NCBI GenBank assembly: GCA_001643675.2
Contig: LSRY02000030.1
Span: 620,001 to 684,000, forward strand
Length of the DNA stretch: 64,000 nucleotides
Direction: 5' to 3'
From: Monocercomonoides exilis PA203
Taxonomy: Eukaryota; Protista; Preaxostyla
Of the stretch, positions 2,244 to 54,299 are shown in pieces. Each line of letters begins with the position of its first letter. Positions within the stretch are counted from its first letter, which is position 1. The position numbers and the translations under genes were made by a program. Below the pieces are notes generated by a model. That model saw only the letters and a program-made list of their open reading frames with translations. It did not search any database and had not been told where the DNA came from.

Positions 2244-2736
2244 CAGTGAGTGCTTTAGCCGATCCAAGTGCAAAACCCGATCCTTGCAAATATTTCTTTT
2301 TTCGTAAAAAATTATTTTAACTTTTCAAAGAAGCTATCTGGTGGTGAAATTACTTTTAACAAGTTCGCATTGGTTTTGGCAACAGATTTATTCTGTGAAG
2401 TTTCGGAATATTGGATTTTAAAACAATTTTCTAAGTTAAGAATATTTTCTGTTTTCATTGAGAAAGGATAAAATAAGAATTTTAAAAAAATTACCTGCGT
2501 GCTTAAAAATTGAAAAATTACTAATATTTTAACAATTTTTTATGATTTGAAATTGTCTGCAATTATTTTTCTCTTTTTCTTTGTTTGATCATGCCCATTA
2601 AGATGCGAAAAACAAATCCAAAGTTCTTCAGCATCTTTGAAAGATGTTTGCGACTATAACTTTGAATGTTTTTCGATGGAAATTAAGTTAAATAATTGTT
2701 GAACCTTTAAAATGCCCAGTTTTAATTTGTTTGTAT
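2244..2736 (+). repeat. Left TIR (493 bp)
   Basis: Reverse complement of 9372-9864. An identical shadow ORF (MQNPILANISFF...) appears at 2268(+) and 9840(-). Confidence 0.95.
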
Positions 2737-20700: not shown

Positions 20701-23700
20701 TGTATTTGGATTCATATCCAGATGCAATTCATGTGGGGAAGGGGAAGGATGGGCTGGGTGGATACGACTCGTGGTTCTGTGGGTTTGACTATTATCCGTG
20801 TGCCACCATCACCCATGCAGCGCAGGTGAGATATCCCGACACAAACAAGAAGATCGAATTGGATTCAGGATATGAGCTTTGTGAGGCAGTTGGAATGACA
20901 GATGGCCATGAATGGGAGATTTCATGTGCCACAAAAGGGATGGAGGTTGGTGTGAAAGCACCAGAGAATTTTGAGTCATCTTGTCTGATTGAGGTTCAGA
21001 GCAAGTGTTCAATGAGAAACATCAAGTTCTGTATTCCATCTGCTCTATCTGGTGCATCATCATCATCTCTGATCACATCCAATTCCATTCTCCTCACACT
21101 CACTGACTGTTCTGTTGTTTGTTCATCTGAGAATCTCATTGGATATTGCTTTGTGAATGTGGTTGGGGGAAAAGTGAAAGTGGAGGGATTGGTGATCACA
21201 GAGACCTTGATATTTGGAGAGCATTCAGTGATTGAGTTTGGCGAAGGGGTGGAATCGGTTGTGTTTTGTGGATGTGAGGTGAACAACATTGAGAAGAGAA
21301 GTGGAGATGGAGGATGGGTGAGCGGAGTGGTTGGAGCAGAAGGGGATGAGGGGAAGAATGGGATGATTGTGATTGAGTCGTGTGTTGTGAAGGGGTGCAG
21401 GTGTGTTGGTGGAAGAGGAGGTGGGATGAGTGTTGTTGTGAAGGGGGAAGGGAGTGTTGTTGTGAATGGGAGTTGTGTGATTGATGGGTGTGAGGCGAAG
21501 TGTTCAGGGGAGAGTTCAGAAGGGAGAAGAAAAGGGAGAGGGGGAGGGATGATGATTATGATGGAGAGCAGGGATGGTTCAATGAAAATGGAATCGGGAA
21601 GAGAGGGTTTGTTTGTGTTTGGAGAGGATAACAAAGCTCAATATGGGAAGGATATGTTTGTTGAATGTGGTGGAGGAGTGTTGTTGGAGTGGAAAGTGAA
21701 TGGGAGTTCATTTTCATTTTTTGATTTTGGTGTGATTCCAACAGATGTGTTGAAGTTGTGTGGGAGTGAGGATGGGAGAGAAGGGGAAGTGATTCCGCTG
21801 TTTGTGTATTTGTGTTCAATCGGGACAAAGCTGAGAGTTGATGGGAAAGGAGAGAGGGCACTGGATCAGAGCCATTGTGGGTTTGAGGAGTTTGGGTGTT
21901 TGACGATTGACTATTGTGTTGGGAAGAGAGCGAGCATCAATGTGAATGAAATTGAAGTTGCATCAGAATCATTGATAAAGAATGAGATGAAAGTGGCATC
22001 ATTTGAGGTGAGTGTTTCAGGGAAAGAAGAAGGGATGAGGGTGATTGTGAGAGATGAAGGATCGATAAATCAAAACAACCTCATTGAGTGTTCAAAATCA
22101 TTTGAGATGAGATATTTGTCATTTGTGCTGAATGATGAAATGAATGGGAAGAGAAGTGGATTTATTCACTCCTCATCATCTACCATAACAATCACCAGTT
22201 GCTCTGTCTCATTTGGAAATGATGAAATGATTGGATTCAATGTGATTTGCATTGAAGGAGGAGGTGTGGTTGTGAATGGATTTGCGATGGAAGGGGGAGT
22301 GAGAATGAATGGGAAATTGCCAATTGTTGTTTCGAATGGAATTGAATTGGAGATGAATAACAGCCGAATGAGTGGAGTGGAAGTCGTTGGCGGAATTGGA
22401 GGAGGAGGAGGAGGATGTTTGAATGTGGAGATGGGTGTGAATGGGGTTGTGAATATTGAAGAATGCAATTTGTCATCAGTGTGTTCAGGTGGAAGTGGGA
22501 TGAAAGGGGGAGGGATGAAGATATCAGTGGGGAAGGGAGGGAGTTTGGAAATGAAAGGAGTGAAATATTCAGGGTGTGAAGTGCCAAGAGAGGATATTGA
22601 GGAAGGAGGGAGAGGAATGGGAGGAGGGATGTTTGTGAAGCTGGCAGATGAGATGGGGTCCTTTGTGATGGAAGGGATGGAATTTGAGAGATGTGATGCC
22701 TGGAAAGGGAAGAATGTGTTTGTTTCGGGATGGGATTTGAGAAAGATTGTGAATGAGGAGCACTTGAAATGGGAGATAAAGGAAGAGGAGTTGGGATCAT
22801 TGGATGAGTTGTGTGGATGGGAGAGGAAGACAGCAGGAGAGGAGGGATATGTGATTCCGCTGGTTGTGTATTTGTGGAGGAACTGGAGTGGGGATGGGTT
22901 TGTTTCTCGAGAGAAAGGAGGAGACTTCAGTGGGTGTGGGTATTCAGAAGCACCATGTTCATCGATTGACCACTTGATATCACTTCGATATCCAACACTT
23001 GGAGAAGGAGAAACACATATTGCCATTGTGGGATCAGGGTTGCTGAGCCATTCCATTTCATTTTCATCATCAATTTCAGAGTCACCAAAAGTGGTGATTG
23101 AAGGGACAAAGAAAGGAACAGGAGTGACGATCAGTGATGAAGATGAGAATGATTTGTCTGATGATGGTTCAATGATCTCCTTGAATGTGAGTCTGTCATT
23201 TGTGAATGTGTCATTCACCAAGCCAGCCATCACAACCCATCACGAAGTGTTGATTGAATCCTCTGGAACAAACACATTATTGTCTGTCTCAGATTGTTCA
23301 TTTGGCCCAGGGAGGGGGGTGGCAGAAAGTTTTGGATATTGTGTGATGAGAGTGAATGGGGGGAGTGTTGTGATTGAGGGGTGTTCGTTGAGCTTGATTT
23401 CAGAGTTGAAAGGGTTGATTGCCTTCAGTTCAAGTGCACATGAGGTGACTGTTCAGAATGTGAACATCTCATTTGCTGATGTGACAGAAAGAAGTCTGAT
23501 TTCGATGATTGAAGATGAAAACCAGATGAATGGAGAAAAGAAGGTGTTTTCAAATGGGAACAGACCAGTTTTGAGGGTTGTTGGGTGTTCATTTGCGAAC
23601 ATCACGAATGAAGGGATTGGAGCGAGTGTTGTTGATGTGGGATCATTTGAGGATGGGGTGGAGTGTGTGATGGATGAGTGTTCGATGTCGAGTTGCAAGA

Positions 23701-26700
23701 GTGGTTTGAGTGATGAAGGAGGGGGGATGAGAGTGGTGCTGAAGAGTGAAGAATCAATGTTGAAAGTGAATGGGAGCTCGTTTTCGATGTGCAAGTGCTC
23801 GAGTGAGACAGGGTGTGGAGGAGGATTGTTTATTGATGGATCAGACCCACATGCCAATTATGGAAATGAGAGTCAGATTCCGCCTCTGAATTTCAAGATT
23901 GTGAACATTCTGTTTGTGATGAATGAGGCGCATGTGGGGAAAGACATATTTGTCAGATGCCACTCGATTGCTCGCCAGATCAACGAAACACTGTTTGCGC
24001 TGAACTACAACCAGGAGTCACTGAACTCGAACAACTCGATCTGTGGGAGGGATGTTTGGAGCGAGGGAGATGTTGATCTGATTCCGCTGATCACATTCTA
24101 TTATTCGGCACAGGTGTTTGTGAGTGGGAGAGGGAGTGATGGGAGGGGATGTGGATCACAGAGCAATCCTTGTTCCAGCATCAACTGTGGGGTTGAGCAC
24201 ATTCAGGAAGGGGTGATGAATGGGATTCTGATTGATGGAGAAGGGTTTGTGAGGAAGGAGTGTGTGATTGGGGATCTGGTTGTGAATTCATTGAAAAAGA
24301 CACAGGGGATTGTTCGGTTGAACTGCAAGATTGAGAAATCAGGTGAGAAGGATTGTGTGATGGAGTTTGTGAATGAATGTTCAGTGGAGAGGTGCTCATT
24401 CCAGTTTGAAGATGGATTTGAGTCAACTCACAATTATCTCATGAAAGTGAAGAATGGAATGACGAAAATACAAGAATGTGAATTCTTCTCTTCTTCAACA
24501 ACAGTTGAGTTTATGAAGTTGAACAGTTCTATTGTGAGTGTGGAAAGTGGAGAGCTGAAGATATCTGAAACAACATTCAGAGATTTGTATTCAACAAGAT
24601 CGGTGCTTTCATTTCATGAAGAATCAGAAGTGACAATTGATGAAACAAGAATATCGAATATTGAATGTGAGGGAGATGTTGTGAGTGTTGGAGGGAAAGT
24701 GAAAGTGGAGATGAAAGAGATGGGAGTTGAGAATGCGACTGTGATGTCAAAGGGGTGTGTGATTGGGATGGAAGAAGCTGAGCAAGGGGTGAGTGTGCTG
24801 AACAGCTCATTCGAAAAGTGTGTGAATTCGGTTGATGAGGGAAGCATGATGCAGATCAGGAATTCCAAAAATGTGAGGATTGAGATATGTGTGTTTGATG
24901 GAGAAAAAAAAATCGAGTTTATCAATGAAGAAAACAATAGAAAAGAGGGATTGTGCAAATGGAATGGGTCATTGGTTGATATTGAAAACAGCAATGCGGA
25001 GATGAGGGAAACAACGATTATGAAGAGCAAGGGAGGTGGGTTGTGTGTGAGTGGAGGGAGTGTGAAGATTGAAAATGGAAAGTTTGAGAACAACAATCCA
25101 TCGATTGAGGGATATCCATCAGCTCGAAGGAATGTGATTTGTGAAGGGGATGGGGAGTTGAATGTTGTGAGTGTGAAAGGGGGAGATGGAATAGAGAAAA
25201 ACACTTCATTGTGGATATTGAACGAGGGATGTGAATTGGGAGGGATAGCAACTGAAAGAGGATCCCCCTTCTTTATTCCAATTCTTGAAGATGTGAAGAA
25301 CACAACACAGCCAAATGGGAATTTGGAGTTGATGATTGCGGGAAAGCTGCTTCTTCCATGTGATCTTTCAGTGAAGATGAGCATGAAAAATGGGGATGAA
25401 GAGGAGATTGTGAGAAAGGGGATTGAAGAAGAAGGGTTTGCGTCAGAGAATGAGATTCACACATTCATTTCATGTTCAGAATGGGAGAAAGTGAGAGAAG
25501 AGACAGAAGTGAGTGTGTGGATTGTGTTTGGGAAAGGAGATTCTCCATCAGCAACTGACTCACTTATTGTGAAGAACAGGAGTGAAAGTGCTGGTAAAGG
25601 AGATGAAAGGATTGTTGAAGGAGGGAAAGAAGGAAAATCGTATTGGTTGTTGATTGTTATTGTGCTAGTTGTGATATTATTGATAATTCTTATCTCACTT
25701 GTGATATTTGTTGTCAGATGGAGAAAGCAAAAGAGAAGAACAAAGGAATTGGAGGAGATTGTGAATGACACAGTGAGAAAGGATCCGAAGGCATTCGAGA
25801 TGGTGACGATGGAGATGACACCAGAGGAGCAGTGGAGAAGAGCTGAGAGGGAGGCAGAAAAGAAGAATGAAGAAAGGATAAAGATAAGAATATATGAGAC
25901 GAATATGGAACATTCAGAGTCATCAGAGCATCTTCTCTCCGAGAGTGGGTCAACAGAATATATTTTGGGGAGAGACTCAGACAAGATTCCACAATGGATG
26001 CTGGAGAAGGTTGACGAAAAGGAAATTGAGGTTGAGGAGGCAAGAAAGAGAACACCATCACCATCCATCTCATCAACTTCAACAACAGATTCAGACTCAA
26101 CATTTGTTCGATCAGAGAGTCTGTGCCCAACAACCTCATCGATGTCCAATCTGGTGGATGCAATGGCCTGTTCATCTCCTCACGAAAAACTGATTGTTGA
26201 TCTGAGGGATTCACTGTTCATGTTGCTTCATGGGTTGAATAAGACAAAGGAGATGCCTATTGGGACTCTGCAGGAGAGGGAGCAGACAGCTGCTCAGATC
26301 CTGTTCTGGGTGGCCAATCTCGCACTCCACTCCTTTGATGAGATGGAAAATGGATTATCTTCCCTCTCCACTCTGAGTCCTCACATTGTACTGTTTTCGG
26401 AACACATGGTGATCTGCGTTGTGATGCACTCTGACTTCTCATCAGATGATAGTTCAGACTCATCATCCATCTCGTCATCGACCATTGTGACATCCGCCAG
26501 CGATGATGATGATTCTCTGCCATCTTCAGCGTTTGAGGATGATGAATACAACAGAAAAGAGTGCCTGAGGTGGAAGGCGCCAGAGCTGCTGATCAACAAG
26601 AAGATGGGAGCAACGAAGGAGTCAGTTGCTTTTTCGATTGGGATGATGTTATGGGAGTGTTTGACTCTGGAGATTCCGTTTGGGGAGCATGAAGGGGAGG

Positions 26701-26960
26701 TGGTAGGGCAGAAGATTGTGAATGGGGAGAGGCCAGACATGAAGCTGGTGGAGGAGAGTGGAATGCCGTTTGTTGTGAGCAAGTGCTTTTCGCCAGATCC
26801 TTCACAACGACCAACACTGGGGAATCTGAAAAAAGAGTTTATCCAGCGCTTTCCAGCAGGGGCAGTGATGTTGACTGTGTCAGATGCAATCGACTTGGAG
26901 GAGCAATCAAAAGAGGAGGGAGAAAGCAATGGAGAAGACACAGAAACATTGTTGTCTTGA
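17790..26960 (+). CDS. 3056-aa single-pass receptor-like surface protein: beta-helix/pectin-lyase-like Cys-Gly-rich ectodomain, TM helix, degenerate TK/TKL-like kinase tail
   Basis: Intronless ORF with a hydrophobic N-terminus, repeated GGG/GGAI + FxxC motifs and CGxxxxPC modules. TM helix YWLLIVIVLVVILLIILISLVIFVV (~25641-25716) is followed by RWRKQKRR. Kinase C-lobe motifs: RWKAPE, SVAFSIGMMLWECLTLEIPF, RPD, CFSPDPSQRPT. Confidence 0.92.
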   Translation: MLTGIYCIVCILCVECLRNGATNDESNLVENSMIERNTDYFNNSLFDLLPNDKNGDKNKLEMIVERNEGGMEENEEKEKSTKKYTNMKNQRDCRIVKGNQFEKSNDELFHYEGEMMKIEKIFEESEIEGCFILINSSMKFKSLGMIQHEERNIVKAGDESLVELNECGLFLMSGMSPFCFTGGCGVFKNISLRSRSNGFLETFPSLFSSKAQEGEISQKFHVSVCSSHFSSFCVSSAPFFFSPSIPLVSLSQLTFSNISTANGACSPSTTMSTQTTCMMSSCLFSSVCDAYDGGIVPSLNNPLASLTAFNTSFVWCCRTRNVECIGTADRKLTPGRQNETFNGANSFTWCEWNGSTTTGESDSWTDGVSSGGAICMYNLGNGELFVSHCIFNGCVAYSRGGGIMCYSIRSFLIENSLFNECHAENHHGGGLYATSISFCTRISGCKFQNCSAFDYGGGLLLQSFQVSGKECIGGENGGGESSCLFDCSLSSCSVSHIYGGGFYCRHVPEQFKMRNIQFILCSAEREGGGMYFHSNQSSIQNGTFYCYFLFFYECKCNNNPSYGHDMMFYDSYNLFLYSENPLKECLSSNTDEQRVCYGYNYISSWNWAFQHTEKKDWLKDKTLYVSVNGDDSNEQCGANEKHPCLSVKKAFEMCEILLSLSITLMEGNHTSEAATIEIVSKKMRVMGVGSEISAIGTKTLSSVGALFSVSTGHLDLLHMKVDCNSSANPSSPSVVVVSDGSGSLSLEDVVITTSNIGDHAISSSVFVVVLSQLSMTDVEIINMNISQSLFSEPVLSFSSSSSALFLTATASGESTLANLTVRNVKLTEGDGVVVAKSVAEGETFVVQNVTIEDCECENGSGGGIKVDLLSPTSKLQAERTTTMNRCTSSEYGGGMMLYLADNSIDFSIVSVDFSGCSASLGGNFVFVNGSNSVNWGITTEKLNVQRDNSKYNELVGYDRSDTTMGLFPLNVYLDSYPDAIHVGKGKDGLGGYDSWFCGFDYYPCATITHAAQVRYPDTNKKIELDSGYELCEAVGMTDGHEWEISCATKGMEVGVKAPENFESSCLIEVQSKCSMRNIKFCIPSALSGASSSSLITSNSILLTLTDCSVVCSSENLIGYCFVNVVGGKVKVEGLVITETLIFGEHSVIEFGEGVESVVFCGCEVNNIEKRSGDGGWVSGVVGAEGDEGKNGMIVIESCVVKGCRCVGGRGGGMSVVVKGEGSVVVNGSCVIDGCEAKCSGESSEGRRKGRGGGMMIMMESRDGSMKMESGREGLFVFGEDNKAQYGKDMFVECGGGVLLEWKVNGSSFSFFDFGVIPTDVLKLCGSEDGREGEVIPLFVYLCSIGTKLRVDGKGERALDQSHCGFEEFGCLTIDYCVGKRASINVNEIEVASESLIKNEMKVASFEVSVSGKEEGMRVIVRDEGSINQNNLIECSKSFEMRYLSFVLNDEMNGKRSGFIHSSSSTITITSCSVSFGNDEMIGFNVICIEGGGVVVNGFAMEGGVRMNGKLPIVVSNGIELEMNNSRMSGVEVVGGIGGGGGGCLNVEMGVNGVVNIEECNLSSVCSGGSGMKGGGMKISVGKGGSLEMKGVKYSGCEVPREDIEEGGRGMGGGMFVKLADEMGSFVMEGMEFERCDAWKGKNVFVSGWDLRKIVNEEHLKWEIKEEELGSLDELCGWERKTAGEEGYVIPLVVYLWRNWSGDGFVSREKGGDFSGCGYSEAPCSSIDHLISLRYPTLGEGETHIAIVGSGLLSHSISFSSSISESPKVVIEGTKKGTGVTISDEDENDLSDDGSMISLNVSLSFVNVSFTKPAITTHHEVLIESSGTNTLLSVSDCSFGPGRGVAESFGYCVMRVNGGSVVIEGCSLSLISELKGLIAFSSSAHEVTVQNVNISFADVTERSLISMIEDENQMNGEKKVFSNGNRPVLRVVGCSFANITNEGIGASVVDVGSFEDGVECVMDECSMSSCKSGLSDEGGGMRVVLKSEESMLKVNGSSFSMCKCSSETGCGGGLFIDGSDPHANYGNESQIPPLNFKIVNILFVMNEAHVGKDIFVRCHSIARQINETLFALNYNQESLNSNNSICGRDVWSEGDVDLIPLITFYYSAQVFVSGRGSDGRGCGSQSNPCSSINCGVEHIQEGVMNGILIDGEGFVRKECVIGDLVVNSLKKTQGIVRLNCKIEKSGEKDCVMEFVNECSVERCSFQFEDGFESTHNYLMKVKNGMTKIQECEFFSSSTTVEFMKLNSSIVSVESGELKISETTFRDLYSTRSVLSFHEESEVTIDETRISNIECEGDVVSVGGKVKVEMKEMGVENATVMSKGCVIGMEEAEQGVSVLNSSFEKCVNSVDEGSMMQIRNSKNVRIEICVFDGEKKIEFINEENNRKEGLCKWNGSLVDIENSNAEMRETTIMKSKGGGLCVSGGSVKIENGKFENNNPSIEGYPSARRNVICEGDGELNVVSVKGGDGIEKNTSLWILNEGCELGGIATERGSPFFIPILEDVKNTTQPNGNLELMIAGKLLLPCDLSVKMSMKNGDEEEIVRKGIEEEGFASENEIHTFISCSEWEKVREETEVSVWIVFGKGDSPSATDSLIVKNRSESAGKGDERIVEGGKEGKSYWLLIVIVLVVILLIILISLVIFVVRWRKQKRRTKELEEIVNDTVRKDPKAFEMVTMEMTPEEQWRRAEREAEKKNEERIKIRIYETNMEHSESSEHLLSESGSTEYILGRDSDKIPQWMLEKVDEKEIEVEEARKRTPSPSISSTSTTDSDSTFVRSESLCPTTSSMSNLVDAMACSSPHEKLIVDLRDSLFMLLHGLNKTKEMPIGTLQEREQTAAQILFWVANLALHSFDEMENGLSSLSTLSPHIVLFSEHMVICVVMHSDFSSDDSSDSSSISSSTIVTSASDDDDSLPSSAFEDDEYNRKECLRWKAPELLINKKMGATKESVAFSIGMMLWECLTLEIPFGEHEGEVVGQKIVNGERPDMKLVEESGMPFVVSKCFSPDPSQRPTLGNLKKEFIQRFPAGAVMLTVSDAIDLEEQSKEEGESNGEDTETLLS

Positions 26961-27956: not shown

Positions 27957-30540
27957 TAACCCTGGGTAACGTGGTGACTTCCGACGAGACATTTTCGATT
28001 TTTGACTGACGTTACAGATTTATCCATATCACAAAAAAAAGAAAAAAAAATCAAAAAAAAAAAAATAATTATCAAAATTACCATTGCACATTTTGAACTG
28101 ACGTGCAAGCGGTTATCGGATTTTTGACACGTCACTGACGTCACCTGTCTCTGACGTCACGCCAAGTCAGAAATGTGTAAATGCTTTAAAGATGTCAAGA
28201 AGAATCAAATAGTCAGTAATGTTACAGAATTGTTATTGCTTTTGTTTTTCTGCTTTATTTCCATAATTTTTTTTTTATTTTTCCCTCAATTCTCCATTAA
28301 TTTCTCAGTGAAATACATACATGAAAAGAAAGAACATGAAAATGCTATTTATTATTTTCTCAACGCAATTGCACAACATTGCGAATGACTTGTTGTCGAG
28401 GTTTTAATTTTGTTATTATTCATTTCAAATTTATATTTAGTGTATATTTTCGATCATGACTTAACCTGCAAAATTGTCTTTGAAAGAAAAATGAATATTA
28501 AGTTTATTCAACATCTTTGTTATAGAAAAACTGTTGGAGATTGATTCAGTTGTTGAAGAAAAGAAGAAATAAGATTATTTGATTGTTTCCATTTTTGTAA
28601 ATTTTGTTTCATTCATAAAAAAAGAAAAATAGAAAAAATTCACAAACAAAACTTTTTCATATTTCGAATAAAAATCTAGTTTCAATTTTGTGAAATGGAG
28701 AAAAAAAGAAAAAAGAACATCAAAGTGACAATATTCATTTCATCTTATTTTCTCAATCATACGTTTTATAGACAAAAGTGTTCATTGGCAATTAATCAAA
28801 ATATTTTTTATTTAAAAAAAGAAAAAGCAATTCGCAAAAAATAGCGATGATTTCTTCATATCCTTCTTCTTTTATCTTTTTGAACATCTCCCTTTTGGCA
28901 ATCTTTCTCTTTGCCTCTTTCATTTTGTAACCAGTTTTTTCTTTCATTCCTTATGACAAGAAAAAAAAATATAAGCACAAATATGCTGCTTTGTGATCAA
29001 TTGTTGATTGCTGAATTTCCTCAAAAAAAAAATTATTACAGCTCCCCATTTCAACAAGTCTTCAACTTTCACGCTTGTGTCATCTGCTGCTCTTCGAATT
29101 GATTCAATGCATTTTTGGCTCATTATACCAGAAGTATCCGTCGCTGCTAGAAATACCTGAGCAATACTGTTGATAAGCCCAGAAAATTCTTCATTCCACA
29201 AATGAAAGTTGAGAAAATATGGCTCCAACGAAAGGAGCCATCTCCAAATAATAAACACTTCTTCTTTTCCAGTTTTTTCTCTTATTTCTCTCTTCCAATC
29301 CACACATTTCGACAGCTCTCCAAGTTCTCTCCCCGCTTCTCTCACAAAATGCAGCTCATTTTCAACAAAATCTTCCAAGCTTCTTTTGAAACAGTATTTA
29401 TGAATCAGAAATTCCCAAATAGAATAATAGTTAAGATGAGAAAGAATGTTGCGTTCCTGATTACATTGGATTACTCCCGCTTCCCATTCAGATACAGTTT
29501 CTGCTCGACAAACTTCATTAAAACAAAAAAAAACCTTGACATTGGAAATAACATAAATATATTCACACATTCTGCCCAAAAGCAACTCAAAAACACCAAT
29601 TCCATTTCCACTTCTTTTTGCAGCTCTTCATTTTCCTCTATGTTCAAAACAGCTTTCAAAAGACAAGGAACGAAAATGGAAGGAACTTTTTTTGAAATTT
29701 AACCATTGGAAAGAAACAGATAACAATCACAAAGATAAACCAGAGCATTTCTTTCTTTTCTTCTTCTTTCTTCTATTTTTTCGAGAATAAACCTCTCTTA
29801 CATTTCACAAAGAAACGAACGATTCAAACCATCAATATTCACGCTCATCAAAATTTTCCAATACTCAACGTGCTCCACAAACACAGCTTCAGTGCCAGAC
29901 ACAATTTTTTATATTCGATCATTTTGTGTATTTTATCAAACATTTTTTTTGGGAAAACAAATTAAATTCTCTGTCTAACATTGTTTCTATTCCTCCATGC
30001 ATTTCTTCCATTTGCTGTCTGCGCATCTCCATTGCATCTTTCAAGCTCAGAAAACATTTCTGAATAAAATCAATAAGATATTATCACAATCATTAAAAAT
30101 TCAGCATTAACATAAAACGCAAACTCAAAAACGAATTTTCAATATACTTCTCCTTTATTTTTTTGCTTATATTGCAGTTGGAAAGTTTCACACTCCAACA
30201 ATTCAAACAAAATAAACACATGTTAATAAAGAAGAAAGAAATTGAAGTTATATGTAAATAAGTGTGAAAAAATTTGAATTCTTCCAAGATTAAACTGATT
30301 TATTCAATAAATAAGCCATTTTGAAGATAATTTTTGAATAAAAAATGAATAATTTTGAAATGGGATATCTTGATCATTCACAAAAAATTCAAAAAAGATA
30401 TTATTATATATGTTCATGTATTTATTTATAATATTTTTTTGTTGTTCTTTTCTTAGATAAATTGGTTTATTATTAATATTATAATGTGGAAAATTGGTGA
30501 TGGACGTTACGAACTTTTTTCTTCACGTCACCCAGGGTAA
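27957..30540. mobile_element. Non-autonomous hAT-like element carrying a helical-family pseudogene
   Basis: TIRs are TAACCCTGGGTAACGTG and CACGTCACCCAGGGTAA. The 8-bp flanks GTTAAGTT / GTTTTGTT match at 6/8. TGACGT motifs cluster in both subterminal regions. Confidence 0.7.
28830..30060 (-). pseudogene. Helical family pseudogene (VPCLLKAVLNIEENEELQKEVEM; NELHFVREAGRELGELSKCVDWKR)
   Basis: Homologous to 57181-58467 but frameshifted. Confidence 0.8.
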
Positions 30541-43165: not shown

Positions 43166-45163
43166 GGGTTATCATTTAACCCCAACCCATTTTTTTATTC
43201 TGACCAAAATTTTTGAAGTGAAAAATTTTGAAAAAATAAAAAAATCCAAAAGAAGAATCAATTCTTCGAATTATCTTTCTTTTTCCTGGTTTTCTTTGCA
43301 TCTCTTCGTTTTCCTCTTCGTTTGGGTCATCAAAAATAACATCAGAGCGTCTTCTTTTGATTTTATGTTTGAATTCAACCATTTCATCTTTTTCGTTTTC
43401 TTTCTCTTGTTTCATGTCTTTTTCCTTCTCCTTTTCTTCATTTCTCCCTTAAAATCTTTCCCAATTGTCGAGAAGTTCTTTTTTTGTTATTAACTTTCCA
43501 AAATAATCGAAACGGAAACGATGGGAAGGATGAGGGTATTTTGAAGATTCCGGCAGTTTGCGAAGAACCGGACTGAAAGTATTATGAATGACTCCGCTTT
43601 CTTCTGAAGCTTTTTTGATGGCAGAAGGAGTGAAAGCGGAGTGAATAGCTTGAGGGAGCACGTCGACAAGTGCTTTTCTCGAAGCAGACGATGAAGTTGA
43701 CGATGGAGCATCAAATGATGAAGAAAGAGAAGTTTTGAGAGTTGCAAATACTCCTCTATCGAGTGGTTGAGACAAATGGGTGCTGTGGGGGATGAGTGTT
43801 ACGACATCTATGTTATTTTCTGAGAAAGTTTTCCAAATTGAAGGATCACCGCGTGAAGGATGAGAGCCGATGAAAAGAAGATATTTCTCTATATCTGGTG
43901 ACATGCGCTTTCTTCTTTCAACGATGGAAGGGAGAAGAACTGTTCCCGCATATTTCTTGAAGTTTTGCTTGTCCATCCAGCCACTTTTATTAGGCCAGAT
44001 GTCCAGAGTTGGAGAGAGAAGAGGCTTCAGTTCGTCCGGTTGTTTAACGCTTGGCCAGAGAATGATGCATGGCAATGAATAACCATCTGCAGCCACGGCA
44101 GCAACAAGTGTTGCATTGTCCATTCTCTGCGCTTCCTTGCAGAACCCAGCGCTTTGTCCAGTTGGATGGATCACTTCAATATTAGCACCAGATGGTACAC
44201 GCAAAGATGATTCATCAACATTAAATATTAATGAAGGTGTGTGATGATTTTTTTCATGTAAATCTGTAATCATGTTATACCAAGGCTTCATTACACTCTT
44301 GCAGGAAACAGCCAGCCTATTTATGTCCAAACTTTTCGGTTTGCTCTTTGTCAACTCAGGATGCAGCTTCAAAAACCCGTACGCTGCAGCATTTGAAACT
44401 GAAATATGTGGCTCGTTTTCTTCTTTTGTATCGTTTGAAACATTTTCCATCTAGAGAAAAAATGTTATTTTTTCAATAAAAAACTTGAGCAAACCAATTC
44501 TCTAGTTTTCTTCATTGTTAAACTGCTCCCACAAATAGAATCAATTTTGATCACATCCAGAACTGTTTCTTCTTTCTCTTTGCTGATTGCCTGCGGTCTC
44601 CCTGGTTTTCCAATTTCAATTTTCGCTCTCAATGATCGAACTGCGTTTTTAATGCTGCTGCGGCTGAATTGCTTAGAATTAATGGCGTCTGTGATCCTGA
44701 CGAAGCCATCATGCACAATATGTGACATTCGTTCCAGTTTATTCTTGTATTTTCTATATTGAAAAGAAAGGACAGTTTGGCATGTTTAAATTTTTTGAGT
44801 CCTTCTTTTCTTTTTTGTTCAAAAAGAATTCTCATTTTTTATTTTTGTGTTTTGATCTTATTTTCAATATTTCAAATAATTAGAAGTTTATTTAATAATT
44901 ATGAAAAATGTTTTGAATGAACAATGCAGCTTTTCACACCTTGAAACCAACCAATTTCTCTTTGAAGTTTGATGGAAGGTTTTAAACCCCCCCATCTCCC
45001 CCCCATGAGAAATAGGCTTCATTTCAAAATACAATTGAAATTCAATATAGATTCCTTTTAAACAAAAAATTGAGTTATTATTTCAAAATGTGGGATATGA
45101 AACTTTTGTAATAAAAAAAAAGGTCAGAGTTAAAAAAAAAAGGAGGGGGTTAAATAATAACCC
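43166..45163 (-). mobile_element. pogo/Tigger-like DNA transposon, copy 2
   Basis: GGGTTATCATTTAACCCC ... GGGGTTAAATAATAACCC with TA TSD. 43166-44980 is near-identical to 13550-15364. Confidence 0.92.
43449..44728 (-). pseudogene. pogo-like transposase copy 2 (intron 44451-44494)
   Basis: Same protein as copy 1 except F>L, with the same D2>G change and in-frame TAA. Confidence 0.85.
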
Positions 45164-47146: not shown

Positions 47147-47714
47147 TGACCGATAGAGTGAAAATGTTGCATGTCGTGTCGCACAGGTCTAATTTCAAAT
47201 GCAAACACAATGGAAATAAACCTGTCTGACGTGATGACCACTGACGTGAAATTTTTCAATTCTGACGGACTTGACCCAAACATTCACGTCAGCGAAATAT
47301 TTCTCGAATTTTCAGAAGCAGATTTTTTTTTGAAAAATGAATCATTGTCGATTATTATTTCATTATCTTTATTTTTCACTGAATAATTATTCTTTTTTGA
47401 AGCTTTTTTTTCTTGTTTAAAAAACAATAAATTATTAATTTTTATGGGTTACTGACGTGAAGGCAAAAAAGGAATATCAGATCGTCATTGACTGTCCTTG
47501 TCAGTCAGGTCACACTAACGTCTTCATGAGTTTGATTGAAAAAGAAAAGCAATACGGTTTAGCTGAAGAGTTAAAATCGTCATTAGTTAACCCTGAAATA
47601 GTTTGATATTTTTTGTAATTTGATAATTCAGATTCATTTTGCTTTTTATAACGAAATCCAAGTTCAATGCATTTGAAAAAAAAATAAAACAATTGGAAAA
47701 GGTTAATTGTCAAA

Positions 47715-50441
47715 TTGTCCAGTTTGAAATACACTGTGAAACACCATCAGGAAAAGGTTCACTTGTTTCTTTTCTTTTTTTTAATATTTCCCATTTTAAA
47801 TTTCAAAGTTTACAAACACCCCAAGAAATATAACGAATTCATATCAAAGTTGTCATTTGAAATTGTTGGAGGTGAGTTGTGGATATCTTATGTAATTGTG
47901 AACATTGATGGTTCTCCAAAAAAAGATTGTCATAAGTACTATATCTGCCCAAACAGCAAGGAAGGTTATGCTTGTGGAGTATCAGGGCGAAAAACTTATT
48001 CTTCAATTGTTAATCATAATTGCAGTTTACTAAATATTTCTTGTATTTCATCTTTCAAAAAGCAACTTGATTTTCAACCAAAGCCAAAAATTGTATCAGA
48101 GAAAAAGCTGGATGGATCCGTATCAAAAAGTCAATTACAAGAGTATTTTGCATCATTTGTGAGTCGGAGCAATATTTCTTTTTTATCATGTTCATCGAAG
48201 GAAGCAAACACTTTTTTTTCATCACTAATTAAAGCAGGTCAAGAAAATCCATCAAAATCTCCGCAATCCATTTTCCCCTCTTTAACTCGTTGTTCAGTGT
48301 CAGAAATCATGATGAAAGAACAAATCAGAAAAAAGGAAGAAAATATCAATAAAATCACCAATACAGGAATTTGTCTCATGATGGATGGAGCAAATGTTGC
48401 TGGCAATCAGTACACTGTTGTTACAGTTTCACAGTTGAACATCAATTCAATACCATTTTTCTGGGGTTTATATGAATCCTGCGGATCAACATCAGAATAC
48501 GAGAAATTGATTTATTCATTAGTATTGGAATTTCAAAAGCATGACGCTGTGGTGAGGAGCATTTGCACAGATGGGTGTGCGTCTCAAAAGAAAGCAATTG
48601 AACAATTATCAACAAAAAATTCCTTTCAATCAGTTGCAGTTGATTCAGTTTTATCAATAAATCCGGTATTTATATACTGTTGCAATCATCTGACGAATTT
48701 GGTGATTTATCATTCATTCAGCAAAGTTCAATTTTTACGTGATTTAAAAAGACAAATACTGGAATTCGCTCAGCAAGCAAATTTAAAGAAAACCAAACAT
48801 CTTTTCAAAAAAAGAATACCAACATTTATTTCCACGAGATGGCAAAGTCTGTATGAATTGTGCTCATTTATAAGAAAAAATCGAGAAGTAATCCTAAAAG
48901 AAAATCTACTGAATGATGGAACATTGTGTAATATCATGAAAGCGGAAGTGTTTCTTTTCCCTCTTCACCTTTTGCAATTAAAATTCGAAAGTGATAAAAC
49001 AAAACTATCTTTTGTTTTCCCTTTATTGCTTGAAGCATTTGGATATTTGTTTTTTTTGACTGAACATCCCTTATTTTCTGTTAATGAATGGCACAATGCG
49101 ATTGTCAACGTGATCGTGTATTTGTATAACTATTTTTTCACTGGTAATAGAGGCATCACAATACCGTTATCATTTGCATTTACTCCAATTGGTTTTCAAC
49201 TTTACAGAAGAGGAGAATTTACATCGCTTTATTTCAATTCACCAAAATGCTTTACTGAAAAATGCAATGACATTTCAAAGTCAAATGATTCATATACAAA
49301 ACATCACACTTTTTCATTTCTCTTTTCATCAACAACAGCTTGTCACTCGGAAGCTCAATCATTTCATGCTTCTTCTGAAAAAGATGACCAATTTTCTCAA
49401 TTCAATTCTTCAATGATCAAAACAAAGGTTTCATTGTTGGCAAATGACATCCAAGAAGGGGCAATGAAAAGATTGAATGAAAAACAATTTGATGGAGATG
49501 TCAACATTTTTTCACATTTTGGATCATCAATGGAAAATGATAATGATGAAGAAGAAAGCCACAAAACCTCAAATCACGATGAATTTTCTTCTATTCTTGA
49601 GCTGATAACGGAAATCGAAAAAGAAAATTATATCATTCAAAAAGACATAGCAGGCAATGAAGAAGGATCGGATTCGCTCAGTGAAGAAGATGAATATGGA
49701 TTATTTCTAGCGGAAGAAAATGATGAAGGCGATGAGTACGTTCCAAGGACATGTGAAATCTTATCATCTGAAACTCCATTATCTTCTTCATATTCATCTT
49801 GTTCAGCTTCAATATCTCTTTCCACACACCCATCAGCAACATCATCATTCAGTTCATTTGAAAGAAGTCATGCAATATCTTCAGAAAGGCAAGTTGAACA
49901 AACTCGTGTTCAACGAAACAAAAAAAATGAAAACAGTGAACGTTTTGATGATGAATGCTACAATTTTGAGTTCAACGATGAAAACGAATGCGATACAGAT
50001 GTTGAAGAATTATTTTCTACAGGAAAAATTCAGATTTGTTGTGATATGAACGTATTTAAAGAAAAGGAATTGTTGAAAAAGGTTGAAAATTCAATCAAAA
50101 AGGACTGGGGGCCACGCCTGTTTGATTCCTTTATGAAATATTCCAAAACAGCGTTGCAAATGCTGGATGAAAATGCTATTCAAAATTTGAACTTACTATT
50201 TCAAAGACAAATGCATTCCTGCCCTGAACAAGTCTTTGAAGAAGATCCCGAGGTTTATTACAAAGCCTTCGCTTCATATGGTGACATTCCAATCCTGTTT
50301 TCCGGATTATGCTTGACTTTAATAGATTCTCCTTGCAGCGAGGCCAGCTGTGAAAGAATTATCTCAAGGATGCGTTTCATATTGGGAGATAAAAGACATT
50401 CGATATGTGCAAAGACATTGGACGCACTGTTGAAAATGTAG
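47715..50441 (+). CDS. hAT-family transposase (true 5' end probably spliced; candidate intron 47757-47808)
   Basis: CLMMDG (D), ICTDG (D), YCCNHLTNL (CxxH), STRWQS, and PCSEASCERIISRMRFILGDKRHSI (catalytic E and hAT C-terminal dimerisation domain). No internal stops. Confidence 0.9.
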   Translation: MSSLKYTVKHHQEKVHLFLFFFLIFPILNFKVYKHPKKYNEFISKLSFEIVGGELWISYVIVNIDGSPKKDCHKYYICPNSKEGYACGVSGRKTYSSIVNHNCSLLNISCISSFKKQLDFQPKPKIVSEKKLDGSVSKSQLQEYFASFVSRSNISFLSCSSKEANTFFSSLIKAGQENPSKSPQSIFPSLTRCSVSEIMMKEQIRKKEENINKITNTGICLMMDGANVAGNQYTVVTVSQLNINSIPFFWGLYESCGSTSEYEKLIYSLVLEFQKHDAVVRSICTDGCASQKKAIEQLSTKNSFQSVAVDSVLSINPVFIYCCNHLTNLVIYHSFSKVQFLRDLKRQILEFAQQANLKKTKHLFKKRIPTFISTRWQSLYELCSFIRKNREVILKENLLNDGTLCNIMKAEVFLFPLHLLQLKFESDKTKLSFVFPLLLEAFGYLFFLTEHPLFSVNEWHNAIVNVIVYLYNYFFTGNRGITIPLSFAFTPIGFQLYRRGEFTSLYFNSPKCFTEKCNDISKSNDSYTKHHTFSFLFSSTTACHSEAQSFHASSEKDDQFSQFNSSMIKTKVSLLANDIQEGAMKRLNEKQFDGDVNIFSHFGSSMENDNDEEESHKTSNHDEFSSILELITEIEKENYIIQKDIAGNEEGSDSLSEEDEYGLFLAEENDEGDEYVPRTCEILSSETPLSSSYSSCSASISLSTHPSATSSFSSFERSHAISSERQVEQTRVQRNKKNENSERFDDECYNFEFNDENECDTDVEELFSTGKIQICCDMNVFKEKELLKKVENSIKKDWGPRLFDSFMKYSKTALQMLDENAIQNLNLLFQRQMHSCPEQVFEEDPEVYYKAFASYGDIPILFSGLCLTLIDSPCSEASCERIISRMRFILGDKRHSICAKTLDALLKM

Positions 50442-52165
50442 GTCTGTATTTCTTGTTTGCATACATCAACATTTCAAATAAATTTAAATGCATTTCATTT
50501 TATATCAAAACGAAGACGAATGAGGAATAATACGAGCTATTCATTTATTAATCTTTTGAAACACTGAAATGAACGAAGGAAATATTTTGAAAACTGTGGA
50601 ATGAATAATTTCATATCGTTTCGTTTCTTTTATCACATTCACATATTACAAATTTCAGGGTTTTTTCTTTACCTTTTTTTTAAATTCACCTATAAAGTTT
50701 TTCTCATTTCATACACTTTGGATAAAGTGTTTTCACAAAAAATGCACTATCAAAGGCAGATGATGCAAATAAGATGTACCAGCAGATGGTGGCAGTCTGA
50801 TTGTTCAGCTGTGGCGAGTCGATATTTGTCATAGAGCAGTTGGTGATGGAGAAAAATAAGGCAGGGAAGGTGGTGGAGGAGAGGATACAGTTGGCGGAGG
50901 TGGATGAAGAAGTTATGTAGGTGATGGCGGTTGTGCTGAGATTGATGGAAGGAGACTGATCGGAAAGGCGGAAAAGAATAAAGATCACAGTAATAAAACT
51001 TTTGTAGAATATATCTATTATCAGAAACTTAATAGAAAATAAAGATGAAAATGAAATAGAAGCAGAAAAAGACGGAGAAGAAGAAGAAGAAGGAGGAGGA
51101 GGAGGAGGAGGAGGAGAAGAAGAAGAGGAATATGAAGGTGATGATGATGATGATAATTGATCAAATAGAGATTCAGCTTCGTCTGTTGAGAGATAAAGCA
51201 TATCAGAAAAATCTTCATCCATTTCGCCTTCTTCCATATCTCCTTCTGCTGACATACTATTCGATGGGAAGAAGAAGATGGCGAAGAAGAAGGTGAAGAA
51301 GAAATGGAAGGAAACGAGGTTTAGGAAGAAGAAGGAATAAATGAAATATAAGTTGGAGAACAAAAATGAACATTGAGAAGAGGCGAAAGATTTTGCATGC
51401 CATTTAATGAAGAGAGTGAAGAAATGGAAGAGAGAGAAAAGGAAAAAGCAGAAGGAGATTAAGATCAAATAGCAATTGATTCTTCCTCCATCTTCTCATC
51501 TCCCTCATTCAGTATCTTCAATATCTTATTCCCAACCAATCTCTTAAAGAAACTTGGCGAGCCAGCTCTTTCTTCATATTCTGCAACATGCCCGCGCCGC
51601 TTCTTGCCTTTTGTTGTTCTGCTTTCTCCAGCTCCAGCCGTTGCATCTCCAGAACATCCTCGGCTGAGAAAGGCATTTCACCTTGAGTATCGTTTCAAAG
51701 AATGTTTTTATTAAGAAAGCAAAGAGATTCGTTGAATTGGCATGTTTATTACCAGAAATAACAAACAAAATTGAATGAAGAACGTTAAATTAAAACTTTT
51801 TTAGAAAACATTTTTTATCACAGGTTTATTAAAAATATTTAAAAAAAGAAATGCCAAAATGTTTGCTTATTAAATAATTGTTATGAACATTATCACGAAA
51901 GTTATTGAACAATGAGAATAAATAAGTCTGGAAATGAAGCAAACTTTGCAAACATCGATGCAGCATTGGTATATCTATAACTAAATAATGTTCAATTATT
52001 TGAACTTTTTGGACTCTCATCCGAATGGTTGAATAGAACTGTGGTCTGACAGAGGAAGTTGCCTTGTTCCTCCCTCTTAACGTCCTCTCTCTGTTTCGTT
52101 ACCAAACTTGTTATCTTTTGAGCAGTCCCAGAAAAATACGTGTGATGATTGGTTCTGTTTGCTCT

Positions 52166-53467
52166 TCAAGTCAGTTGCGCATGTAATAAAATTGCAACTT
52201 CAGTGAAGAGTGGCGTTGCGCGAGTGAGCTCCAGTGAGTTGGTTGTGGTTGTTACCATCTTTCTGTCAAGAAACAGAATGAAGTGTAATGGCTGAGAACA
52301 AAAAAGTGATGATGAGGAAAGTGATGATGTTGATTGTGATTGTAAATGTGAGTTTGATGGTTGAGGGATGCCACTGGAGGCGATGATGGTGGCAGTTGCA
52401 TCGTTGCCTGTAATCATTATATTTGGGGCACGGAATATGAGAGTCTTTAAGGGAGTGAAGGTTGAGGCGAGGAGCGTGAGGGAATTGTCTTGATCATCTG
52501 TCAAACATTCAAGAGCATACTCGATTGTGGCGCATGGCCTAAGATGTGTTACTCCGCAGACATCACCATCTGTTCCGTTGCTTGCAATGATTTTGTAAGT
52601 AGTAATGAGAGGAAGCCAGCCATTATATATTTCGCTATCAGCTGTTCCATAGATCCATACTCTGTTCGTTGGAGTGGTTGAGCCACATTGCTGGAAAGGA
52701 GATTGGGTGATTGCATTGCCATTGAAGAACAAATCATTCCCCCTGCCGTTTGTTGCAGTGTTGCCATCAAAGAAACAGAATGTGATGAATTTATTTCCTC
52801 TCATCCAGGAATAAGTGGCTGAACAGCAAAGCGCAGCTCCTCCCCATGAAGTTGAAGTTGATATCAATTTGTTATTTATAATCTGGCAATCATTAACAAA
52901 AAATTGATTTGGCTTATTTACAGGAGGATCATTGAATGTGAGAGAACCAGCAGAATCACCACCAGAATTTGAAATGCACTTGCATTTGGTGAATAAGAAT
53001 TTACCATTTGATGGAAAATCACCAATCCAGAAATACCAACCAGTTCCACACCAGCCAGATATTGAACAACTTTCCACTCTGTTATCTGAGAATGAATAAA
53101 CAGAATTTGATTGTGACCAGCCAACATGAGAAACTCCTCCATTAGCTGCAGAACAACTTGTGAAATTGGATTTAACAATGTTAACATTTAACAAATATAT
53201 GCAATAGAACGCTCCACCATGATTATCATTTGAATAATTGAAAAGCGAGCAAGAAGTGATTGTGATACTTGCATATGCGCAAGCAATTTTAAGAGTACCA
53301 CCTTGATCTCCTGTGCAATTTGAATCATTCCACTCGTACCTTTCAAAGAGATGATTGTTCCTATCAAAAGTGGCCAATCTTAGTGTTTTTCTTTGAGATT
53401 CTGTTCCAACATACACAGCAGGTGTATTAGAAGTAGATCGATAAAGAAAAAGAAGTTGGTTGCACAA
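52166..53467 (-). CDS. Beta-helix surface-protein-like cargo ORF (433 aa; 5' end frameshifted or truncated)
   Basis: GGTLKI, HGGAFYC, FTSCSAANGG, WGGAALC, GNTATNGRGNDLFF, and the GTDGDVCGVTHLRPCATIEYAL module. Lies inside the hAT TIRs. Confidence 0.75.
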   Translation of the reverse strand: MCNQLLFLYRSTSNTPAVYVGTESQRKTLRLATFDRNNHLFERYEWNDSNCTGDQGGTLKIACAYASITITSCSLFNYSNDNHGGAFYCIYLLNVNIVKSNFTSCSAANGGVSHVGWSQSNSVYSFSDNRVESCSISGWCGTGWYFWIGDFPSNGKFLFTKCKCISNSGGDSAGSLTFNDPPVNKPNQFFVNDCQIINNKLISTSTSWGGAALCCSATYSWMRGNKFITFCFFDGNTATNGRGNDLFFNGNAITQSPFQQCGSTTPTNRVWIYGTADSEIYNGWLPLITTYKIIASNGTDGDVCGVTHLRPCATIEYALECLTDDQDNSLTLLASTFTPLKTLIFRAPNIMITGNDATATIIASSGIPQPSNSHLQSQSTSSLSSSSLFCSQPLHFILFLDRKMVTTTTNSLELTRATPLFTEVAILLHAQLT

Positions 53468-53947
53468 ACGAGCAGAAAGAAAGAATGAAGTGGTGTAGAG
53501 GGAGAAATAGATACGGAGTAGAAGATGAAAAATACATTGAAAAAGATTATCTTAAAGAAAATACAAAGAATAATTAAATTGAAGAAGCACTTAGCGTTAA
53601 CAAAAAACCGTCTGCATTACAGAAATATATGAATGAATTATATCGTTGAAATATTTTATTAAATCGATTGAAAAATGAAAAATGAAAGGAATTTCAAAGG
53701 TTTCAAACTGTTGAAGAAATAAATAGCATATATATGTCTGATAAAAAAATAATGTGAAAGAACAAAATACACATTGTTGCACAATCAATGCAAAACGAAT
53801 CTTAATAAAGAACAATTCATTCGAAAATTCAAACTGAAATAAATTTATGGGATATGAGAAAAAATCAATTTTTGATAAACTCAAAAATGAAAAAAACAAA
53901 TAAAGTTCAAAAAATAAAAACTCACATAAAAATAATAATTCACTCTT

Positions 53948-53948
<1 letters not shown>

Positions 53949-53995
<47 letters not shown>
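53949..53995 (+). repeat. Poly-A tract near the hAT right end
   Basis: Homopolymer visible directly. Confidence 0.9.
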
Positions 53996-53996
<1 letters not shown>

Positions 53997-54299
53997 ACTG
54001 GAAAACTACTGACGGACGTGAAAAATTTTTTTCAACACGTCATACAGGTTTAAATGGAAATAATGAAATTGCAATGAAATTTTCAATCAGATAAATATGA
54101 TTATTCAAAAATTGTTAAAAGGAAAACTGTTGTTAAAATCATCAATAATAATAAAATGATATTATTTTCATCTGTTATCAAATAAACTATTTTTGGTTGT
54201 TGTTTTCGGTTCTATCAAATGTTTTTTCTTTGCGATTCTTAAAGATAAAATTTGATCATAAATATTATTGAAAAATACGAAAAGAAAACGCAAAGTTAA

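Follow-up and report, generated by a model that had tools for sequence, protein, structure and literature searches.

Among transposons of the hAT superfamily, the nearest described ones are of the Hermes/Ac type (2bw3, 4d1q, 6dww, and 8edg), whose members have 8-bp target-site duplications (TSDs), short terminal inverted repeats (TIRs), CxxH and RW motifs in the transposase, and a C-terminal block with the catalytic glutamate. The capture of host genes by hATs as such is already known from plants and fungi. In the fungi Pseudocercospora fijiensis and Pyrenophora tritici-repentis, complete hATs captured and amplified the coding sequence of histone H3 (PMC6710886, PMC3538342), a small housekeeping-gene cargo whose copies are made inactive through repeat-induced point mutation (RIP). 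Plant Pack-TYPE elements, which include Pack-MULEs and Pack-hAT-like elements, are bounded by TIRs and TSDs and hold host gene fragments (PMC8903248); they are non-autonomous by definition and contain shuffled exons from several genes. Among non-plant DNA transposons, Turmoil-1 of Caenorhabditis elegans holds transduplicated protein-coding sequence, which is reported to lie within the long inverted termini of an element of another kind (PMC2572040).

The present analysis concerns a 6.8-kb DNA transposon at positions 47217-54052 of a 64,000-nucleotide stretch of the genome of the oxymonad Monocercomonoides exilis PA203 (C26:620001-684000; hereafter the window, to which positions given without a contig refer). 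The long-read assembly of this strain has been published as 101 contigs of about 82.3 Mb (PMC8767320), and the genome searches reported here covered 82,301,135 bases in 101 contigs. With good confidence, the element is taken to be a divergent hAT with an apparently intact transposase gene and a passive, captured fragment of a receptor gene, the core of which has been replaced by sequence from paralogs.

The window element shares the 8-bp TSDs, the short TIRs, and the CxxH and RW motifs with the Hermes/Ac type and has a C-terminal block that aligns with it at the candidate catalytic glutamate, but it differs in several respects: its transposase has no Pfam hAT domain and shows about 16% identity in structural alignment, its TIR starts with TAAAC rather than YARNG, the gene would have two short 5' introns, a disordered insert of ~310 residues precedes the C-terminal domain, and 3.6 kb of extra DNA lies on the 3' side. 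Like the fungal elements, it is a complete hAT amplifying host coding sequence. The sequence-only reading of this locus had called an autonomous element with an open passenger gene unusual, but the fungal work had already described a complete hAT with host coding sequence as cargo (PMC6710886). In contrast to the fungal cases, the cargo is a receptor fragment from a giant multigene family, the host is a metamonad, and the cargo core appears to have been exchanged with paralogs. Relatives of about 4 kb on C63, C76, C23, and others match the description of the plant Pack-TYPE elements, including the absence of a transposase, whereas the window element has its own transposase gene and holds one fragment of one huge family. 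The host-copied sequence that defines Pack-TYPE elements is present in it, as positions 50733-51016 and 52285-53441 match at least 97-149 family members in frame. With Turmoil-1 it shares transduplicated coding sequence in a DNA transposon outside plants. Particular to this locus are the oxymonad host, the extreme divergence of the transposase, the introns, and a passenger core exchanged with a huge paralog family; a limited literature search found no published account of repeated overwriting of transposon cargo by paralogs.

Ends and insertion of the element

The DNA of the window is AT-rich (GC 26-46%) and does not resemble human DNA. The element is flanked by two identical copies of an 8-bp TSD, AATGGAAA, read directly at 47209-47216 and 54053-54060. 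Its TIRs are 17 bp long and agree at 16 of 17 positions, the 5' copy being TAAACCTGTCTGACGTG (47217-47233, plus strand) and the 3' copy, compared as its reverse complement, TAAACCTGTATGACGTG (54036-54052, minus strand). When the TIR pattern was searched against the assembly with one free position and one mismatch allowed, 75 matches were obtained compared with 2 for the reversed control, and the matches often paired in an inward-facing orientation 2.8-8.2 kb apart. Further elements with the same ends have differing perfect 8-bp TSDs, namely ATAACTTC (C68), AATAAAAC (C63), CTTTGGTG (C76), and CTTTTCAT (C23). The TSD, the TIRs, the 75:2 enrichment, and the C68 copy, which begins and ends at the identical bases, together establish the boundaries and the mobility of the element and rule out a chance match. 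An interrupted host gene was sought at the insertion site, where the joined flanks are spanned only by one low-complexity frame of 83 codons.

Inside the 5' TIR, the subterminal region (47217-47525, plus strand) contains repeats of TGACGTG at 47227, 47242, 47285 (minus strand), and 47453. In the whole window the motif was counted 15 times, where 2.7 would be expected; five of these sites lie within the element ends, and the transposase possibly binds to them. The terminal 54-107 bp of the region are 79-91% common to about 45 other elements. The 3' subterminal region (53442-54035) is specific to the element family, as homology with the 4-kb elements runs contiguously across the junction between gene-derived and element DNA. 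An uninterrupted run of 47 A residues lies within it at 53949-53995, about 40 bp inside the TIR.

Affiliation and structure of the transposase gene

The transposase frame on the plus strand comprises 917 codons from stop to stop (908 codons as the listed open reading frame) and contains the motifs MDGAN, CTDGCAS, CCNHL, TRWQS, and CSEASCERIIS. When this long frame, rather than the spliced product described below, was used for sequence and fold searches, the Hermes transposase was its sole sequence match in the PDB (E = 6e-4). A profile, A1, made from the window transposase and eight genomic paralog loci matched Hermes with E = 4.9e-5 and aligned with it at the CxxH/RW and catalytic-glutamate blocks, so that CCNH pairs with the Hermes CSSH, the two TRW motifs coincide, and the glutamate of CSEASCER falls on that of SAASER. 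The final ~45 residues align with Hermes 459-503, although that stretch alone reaches only E = 0.044 and no PF05699 match. In a model predicted with AlphaFold2 (AF2), the predicted local distance difference test (pLDDT) score of the core was 60-88, and a Foldseek search with this model returned Hermes in all of the top 11 positions (E 6e-9 to 7e-7, probability 1.00), followed by the P element, ISCth4, and retroviral integrases. On the strength of the PDB, profile, and Foldseek matches, the transposase is placed, by sequence and predicted fold, as a very divergent hAT of the Ac/Hermes type.

Other hAT features found are the 8-bp TSD, short TIRs in the class of about 10-25 bp, and CxxH and RW motifs in an RNase-H-like transposase. 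The YARNG start of hAT TIRs is a tendency of the superfamily and not a strict criterion; the window TIR departs from it at the fifth base, which is C instead of G. At least 50 transposase paralogs with 34-50% identity are present in the genome, many with open frames of ~900-950 amino acids. At 49140-50075 (residues ~444-756 of exon 3), the catalytic core of the window transposase is separated from the C-terminal hAT block by an acidic, serine-rich insert of ~310 residues that is predicted to be disordered, and an insert of this kind but variable length is also seen in the paralogous transposases.

No ATG occurs in the long frame until about codon 198-207 (numbered from the listed start or the stop before it); conservation among the paralogs nevertheless begins at its very first codons (KVYKHPKK), in one paralog straight after a stop codon. 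Upstream of this main block, two short conserved coding blocks were recognized in the window and in seven paralogs, with GT after and AG before. Because the frame of the upstream blocks relative to the main block varies among paralogs (0, 1, or 2), the intervening segments are probably introns. In the resulting model, exon 1 (47526-47600, plus strand, as are the following) consists of an ATG and 24 codons and ends at a GT donor, the pattern L.EEL..SL.N..I followed by GT being found upstream of seven paralogous genes. Intron 1 (47601-47662; 62 nt, GT...AG), likewise predicted from paralog conservation, leads to exon 2 (47663-47756), which has 31 codons and 1 nt, includes NAFEKK and CQIVQFEIHCE, and is conserved in the paralogs. 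Intron 2 (47757-47808; 52 nt, GT...AG) has its donor G/GT and acceptor AAAG/ at the same positions as in the paralogs. Exon 3 (47809-50441), to which the Hermes profile and fold matches belong, comprises 877 codons, including the split first codon, and the stop codon; it contains the candidate catalytic D motifs (48381-48395 and 48564-48584), CxxH (48678-48692), RW (48834-48848), and the C-terminal SE..ER block (50334-50366). The spliced transposase would have three exons and 933 codons with no internal stop.

A three-way comparison of the window, C68, and C33 copies placed 12 synonymous and 15 non-synonymous changes on the branch of the window copy, a ratio of non-synonymous to synonymous rates (dN/dS) of 0.32 (binomial p = 0.004) on a branch only about 1% long. 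By this measure the gene descends from a lineage subject to purifying selection and shows little decay. The gene is apparently intact, and its product may be active, given the intact three-exon frame, the low dN/dS of the short branch, and the existence of 4-kb copies that are 99% identical. The two sibling copies are broken. That on C68 is broken by stops and a 241-bp insertion, and that on C33 (L032 3773-6590 = C33:658772-661589) corresponds only to element positions 427-3241, with 88% identity and many stops; it has neither TIRs nor cargo, starts inside intron 1, and ends just past the stop codon.

The perfect TSD and matching TIRs, the uninterrupted frame with its five motifs, and the hAT identity had all been proposed in the sequence-only reading, and the comparisons with Hermes by sequence, profile, and predicted fold agree with it. 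Its further claim of an intact transposase is right as regards the open frame but needs amendment at the 5' end, where that frame has no ATG and the start codon would lie in a separate upstream exon at 47526. A potentially autonomous hAT missed by standard domain models has a bearing on oxymonads, in which repeats are mostly unclassified, and the element could help to annotate the roughly 35% of the genome labelled "unclassified repeat."

Nature and source of the cargo

Beyond the 3' end of the transposase gene come about 3.6 kb of other DNA, in which, as had been noted before, a beta-helix coding fragment is found. The frame concerned, on the minus strand at 52166-53467, has 433 codons (461 from stop to stop) and consists of a family-derived part, piece A, and ~42 read-through codons. 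Piece A (52285-53441, minus strand; ~385 codons) encodes a beta-helix ectodomain, and residues 6-391 of the frame have at least 97 genomic matches with 59-68% amino acid identity, many inside frames of 2600-3100 amino acids. A distal part of the captured fragment, piece B (50733-51016, minus strand), was recognized by in-frame family matches and by a tblastx match to the genomic member L016: residues 165-252 of a 254-residue frame have in-frame counterparts in more than 140 members of the family, in a segment that is conserved at 89-96% across the receptor family. The two pieces are adjacent in the genes and in the 4-kb elements but 1.27 kb apart in the window element, where they are split by an insert (51017-52284), partly of GAA/GAG low complexity, that is present in C68 and absent from the 4-kb relatives and the genes. 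A source for this insert was sought and none could be assigned, the insert being found only in the window element and C68. Family homology of the cargo ends near 52285, beyond which the frame enters unrelated DNA for ~42 codons.

The cargo frame has its first ATG at codon 221, and a search for an upstream start exon in 53468-54031 gave only T-rich low-complexity frames. The cargo has neither a signal peptide region nor a transmembrane segment, and the kinase tail is missing as well. In the parental genes, the open frame extends about 357 codons farther upstream (L016) and about 1800 codons downstream of the cargo part, to the C-lobe of a kinase. The missing early ATG, the greater length of the parental frames in both directions, the splitting insert, and the read-through end show that the cargo is a piece from the interior of a receptor gene and not a gene.

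For the cargo domain, 12 family members were aligned as the basis of an AF2 model, whose pLDDT values are 70-92 over residues ~30-285. With VIA-align it superposes on 7c7d over 229 residues with Z 17.7 and a root mean square deviation of 3.4 Å, and all of the 248 chains that score Z ≥ 8 are beta-helix proteins. Foldseek alone returned nothing significant for this model (E ≥ 0.12). The superposition on beta-helices, with Z up to 17.7, supports the prediction that the domain is a right-handed parallel beta-helix.

The source of the fragment is a family of receptor-kinase-like proteins. A 2699-residue frame on C47 contains both a cargo-type domain (329696-330838) and a match to PF07714 positions 162-257 (323912-324202), and piece B and the kinase match occur in one frame on C6 (2714 residues) and C7 (2551 residues). 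In at least three cases, the strand and the frame length of a match to the domain or to piece B agree with those of a match, about 5-7 kb downstream, to PF07714 in its C-terminal half. The occurrence of the cargo-type domain and a kinase in one frame fits the published statement that M. exilis has no larger gene family than that of the tyrosine-kinase-like (TKL) proteins (PMC6759080), a family that overlaps the "unclassified repeats" of the genome (PMC6759080, PMC8767320). The best single match to the cargo core of the window element is 82% identical, and the parental family is clear.

Copies and relatives in the assembly

A second full-length copy of the element lies on the minus strand of C68 (146086-153289), with the same end bases, perfect TIRs, and the TSD given above; it is collinear with the window element throughout and decayed. 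No genomic match to the 5' 309 bp exceeds 88%, and none to the element body exceeds 93%. As no other copy of the window element surpasses 93% identity, there is no support for a recent burst within this subfamily.

The relatives of about 4 kb on C63, C76, and C23 (3.95-4.0 kb) have related TIRs and differing perfect 8-bp TSDs. In common with the window element they have ~80 bp at the 5' terminus, the stretch at element positions 3539-3710, and element positions 5092-6836, the last as one contiguous match that crosses the junction between gene-derived and element-specific DNA. An internal segment of 1.3 kb peculiar to this family occurs in about 14 copies, and at least 17 TIR matches adjoin cargo matches when judged by coordinates. 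A transposase remnant was sought in the 4-kb elements and none was found; they carry the 1.72-kb receptor fragment uninterrupted. The copies on C63 and C91 are about 99% identical across 3.9 kb, with C91 lacking the first ~80 bp. A transposase of the window type may also mobilize these relatives.

Other transposase-bearing subfamilies seem to be ~8.2-8.3 kb long, as judged by the coordinates of TIR, 5'-end, and transposase matches (C46:166025-174322, an element on C6 ending at 1168528, and C10:1553736-1561913), which leaves ~5 kb of extra DNA in each. The 3' ends of the paralogous transposase-bearing elements were not found inside the loci examined and must therefore lie more than 1.35 kb beyond the stop codon. 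In the C10 element, a beta-helix cargo adjoins one end; coordinates were the sole basis on which this 8.2-kb element, C25:90123-93712, C5, and others were assessed.

Origin of the cargo and replacement of its core

In a tree made from the cargo edges (flanks only), all nine element-borne copies fall on one side of a branch with support 86/92, the window element and C68 being sisters (100/99) and the seven 4-kb copies forming a group (93/91). The shared junction and this tree indicate that the cargo fragment was captured once.

The core behaves differently. In windows of 200 bp, the window element and C68 are 88-96% identical, except in a hypervariable tract at 52344-53236 (element ~5128-6020), where identity is only 59-77% and the edges are sharp. 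The same tract is 57-75% identical between the 4-kb copies, which otherwise agree at about 90-97%. When a tree was made from the tract only, the element copies were scattered among genomic paralogs, C76 grouping with L014/L015 (97/94) and C1 and C5 falling inside a clade with L016, L019/20, and L025/26 (100/99). Approximately unbiased (AU) tests, for which the groups had been set beforehand by TIR boundaries, rejected a single clade for the tract, whether all nine copies (p = 0.0004) or the seven of the 4-kb kind (p = 0.0018) were taken. The sharp-edged loss of identity, the scatter in the tract tree, and the AU rejection show that the core has been overwritten repeatedly by paralogs. Within it, the best paralog switches between 60-bp windows, with local identity up to 98%, which suggests a mosaic of paralogs.

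Across the cargo domain, dN/dS is 0.24-0.41 among element copies and 0.19-0.28 among genomic pairs, and the former range agrees with imported gene sequence that has decayed to some extent. Long open cargo frames persist in C76 and C23, and the cargo is broken in C68, C63, C91, and C1. Overwriting by paralogs would thus explain the open frame and the low dN/dS better than a function of the cargo, and it follows more generally that these two signs, in a transposon, need not mean a functional passenger, since exchange with hundreds of paralogs can mimic selection.

These results alter the picture of the cargo given in the sequence-only reading. The ~3.6 kb of extra DNA and the beta-helix, of a subfamily other than that of a 3056-residue gene in the same window (23% identity to the cargo), were recognized correctly, and the search of the assembly for further copies showed that the cargo is no one-off, as C68 and about 14 non-autonomous relatives carry it as well. 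The 433-codon frame is indeed open, but it has no early ATG and its last ~42 codons lie in the unrelated insert. What had been described as a passenger gene is an internal, split fragment of a receptor-like gene of 2600-3100 residues, and recent activity finds no counterpart in the nearest copies, which are 88-93% identical and broken. The proposed dN/dS comparison among copies did give low values, but the differences lie in the paralog-imported tract, and the openness of the frame, which had been taken as a sign of function, is better accounted for by that import.

A side observation concerns the closely similar copies on C63 (L034 7420-7690) and C91 (L033 5845-6115), in which 31 of ~55 differences lie in one 250-bp patch (p about 1e-22) within the most conserved segment of the family (89-96%). 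No match above 92% to the C91 patch was found across the assembly, and 11 of 30 variant bases were absent from 18 sampled paralogs. The patch could reflect mosaic conversion, a missing donor, or a polishing artefact.

Proposed history and alternative explanations

The element moves by cut-and-paste with 8-bp target duplications, and its transposase would recognize the TIR and the subterminal TGACGTG repeats. By analogy with known transduplication, an ancestral element would have captured a ~1.7-kb internal piece of a beta-helix ectodomain once, and the piece and its junction are now present in the window element, in C68, and in the about 14 transposase-less 4-kb relatives. The 1.27-kb insert splits the piece in the window/C68 sub-lineage. 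The ~0.9-kb core has been replaced repeatedly by sequence from among the hundreds of paralogs; we favour a homology-driven process, which would be either ectopic gene conversion or template switching in the repair of the excision gap. Such replacement would keep the frame open and the differences gene-like with no selection on the element-borne copy, and the cargo would be a passive passenger devoid of function.

Several observations weigh against this account. Pfam scans of all four frames, extended for the two long ones to E = 10, gave nothing useful, and a word-based search of 5.8 billion proteins with the transposase found no relative. The AF2 model of the transposase is weak overall (mean pLDDT 50, template-modelling score about 0.3), the low pLDDT being due to the about 310 disordered residues, and the candidate catalytic D motifs MDGAN and CTDGCAS lie outside all alignments to solved hATs. 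The splice model is a prediction from paralog conservation. As to the cargo, a dN/dS of about 0.3 and a frame open over 461 codons would equally fit real selection, and no donor above 82% was found for the replaced cores of the window element and C68 in searches that scored 40 of about 500 candidates; the replacements would therefore be old, mosaic, or derived from paralogs that are unassembled or have since changed.

The alternative that gives the cargo a role sees in the beta-helix frame a functional passenger gene, or a chimeric gene of the element, that selection maintains, maybe a secreted or decoy surface module expressed from the 3' end, with the element as an autonomous gene-carrying vehicle. 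A frame open over 461 codons in DNA of 35% GC, the dN/dS of 0.24-0.41 among element-borne copies, the long open frames in C76 and C23, and the retention of the fragment in transposase-bearing and 4-kb lineages across about 25% divergence would all suit it. We nevertheless regard it as distinctly improbable, given the missing early ATG and the lack of any credible exon in 53468-54031, the absence of a signal peptide region, transmembrane segment, and kinase tail, the end by read-through into the insert, the broken cargo in four copies, and the confinement of the gene-like substitutions to the tract whose phylogeny shows paralog import. A more serious competitor, if still a doubtful one, is a secondary chimera, in which a cargo-less autonomous element gained the cargo and the 3' end of a 4-kb Pack-type element by recombination or template switching, the 4-kb family being the original carrier and no autonomous element ever having made the capture. 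That family is the commoner (about 14 copies), holds the fragment uninterrupted, and has no transposase remnant; it shares only the terminal ~80 bp and a further ~70 bp of the 5' region with the window element, and the shared 3' half, about 76-77% identical, implies an old split. The data do not give the direction, however, as replacement of the transposase in a cargo-bearing autonomous ancestor yields the same pattern, and the other transposase-bearing subfamilies, which seem to span 8 kb and to have their 3' ends far off, suggest that long extra DNA is common in autonomous members.

It is also conceivable, if scarcely credible, that the divergent core and the clustered differences are an artefact of long-read assembly and polishing, with short reads from paralogs mis-mapped and no biological exchange. 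The published assembly underwent ten rounds of short-read polishing (PMC8767320), and the 250-bp patch between the 99%-identical C63 and C91 copies, with no donor above 92%, sits in the segment that is best conserved across the family (89-96%). Mis-polishing, however, cannot yield ~0.9 kb at 59-77% identity with intact frames and codon-position bias in many independent copies, and the tract phylogeny has well-supported groupings with specific paralogs. Repeated replacement of a passive fragment is kept as the preferred explanation. Were the exchange to run also from element to gene, transposons would feed variation into the largest surface-receptor family of the organism. Pseudogene archives serve surface-protein variation in other microbes, and an idea comparable in logic is that the element copies across many chromosomes are mobile donors and recipients that diversify receptor ectodomains by patchwise recombination, a transposon-borne archive of cassettes; we rate this as highly improbable.

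Other features of the window and of the receptor family

A member of the same general kind of protein is encoded in the window itself at 17790-26960, as an open frame of 3056 residues for a giant receptor-like protein with a beta-helix-type ectodomain and a transmembrane-like segment near residue 2620. Its match to PF07714 covers positions 161-257, the C-terminal kinase half only. Because many family members show the same half-kinase match, this end may be a pseudokinase tail.

Just downstream of this gene, at 27957-30540, lies a transposase-less hAT-like element of 2.58 kb with the ends TAACCCTGGGTAACGT and TTACCCTGGGTGACGT (the latter on the reverse strand). Its flanking 8-mers, gttaagtt and gttttgtt, agree at 6 of 8 positions, which makes an old insertion probable.

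Elsewhere in the genome, dozens of short versions of the beta-helix domain, in frames of 400-800 residues, occur at about 1.49-2.49 Mb of C25, including the identical inverted pairs L014/L015, L019/L020, and L021/L023. It has the appearance of an array made up of truncated members of the family or of segmental duplications. In the window, two ATG-started frames on the minus strand, 13833-14834 and 43449-44450, have exactly the same length (333 residues) at a distance of 30 kb from each other, and either a gene present twice or a portion of some repeated element may be behind them.

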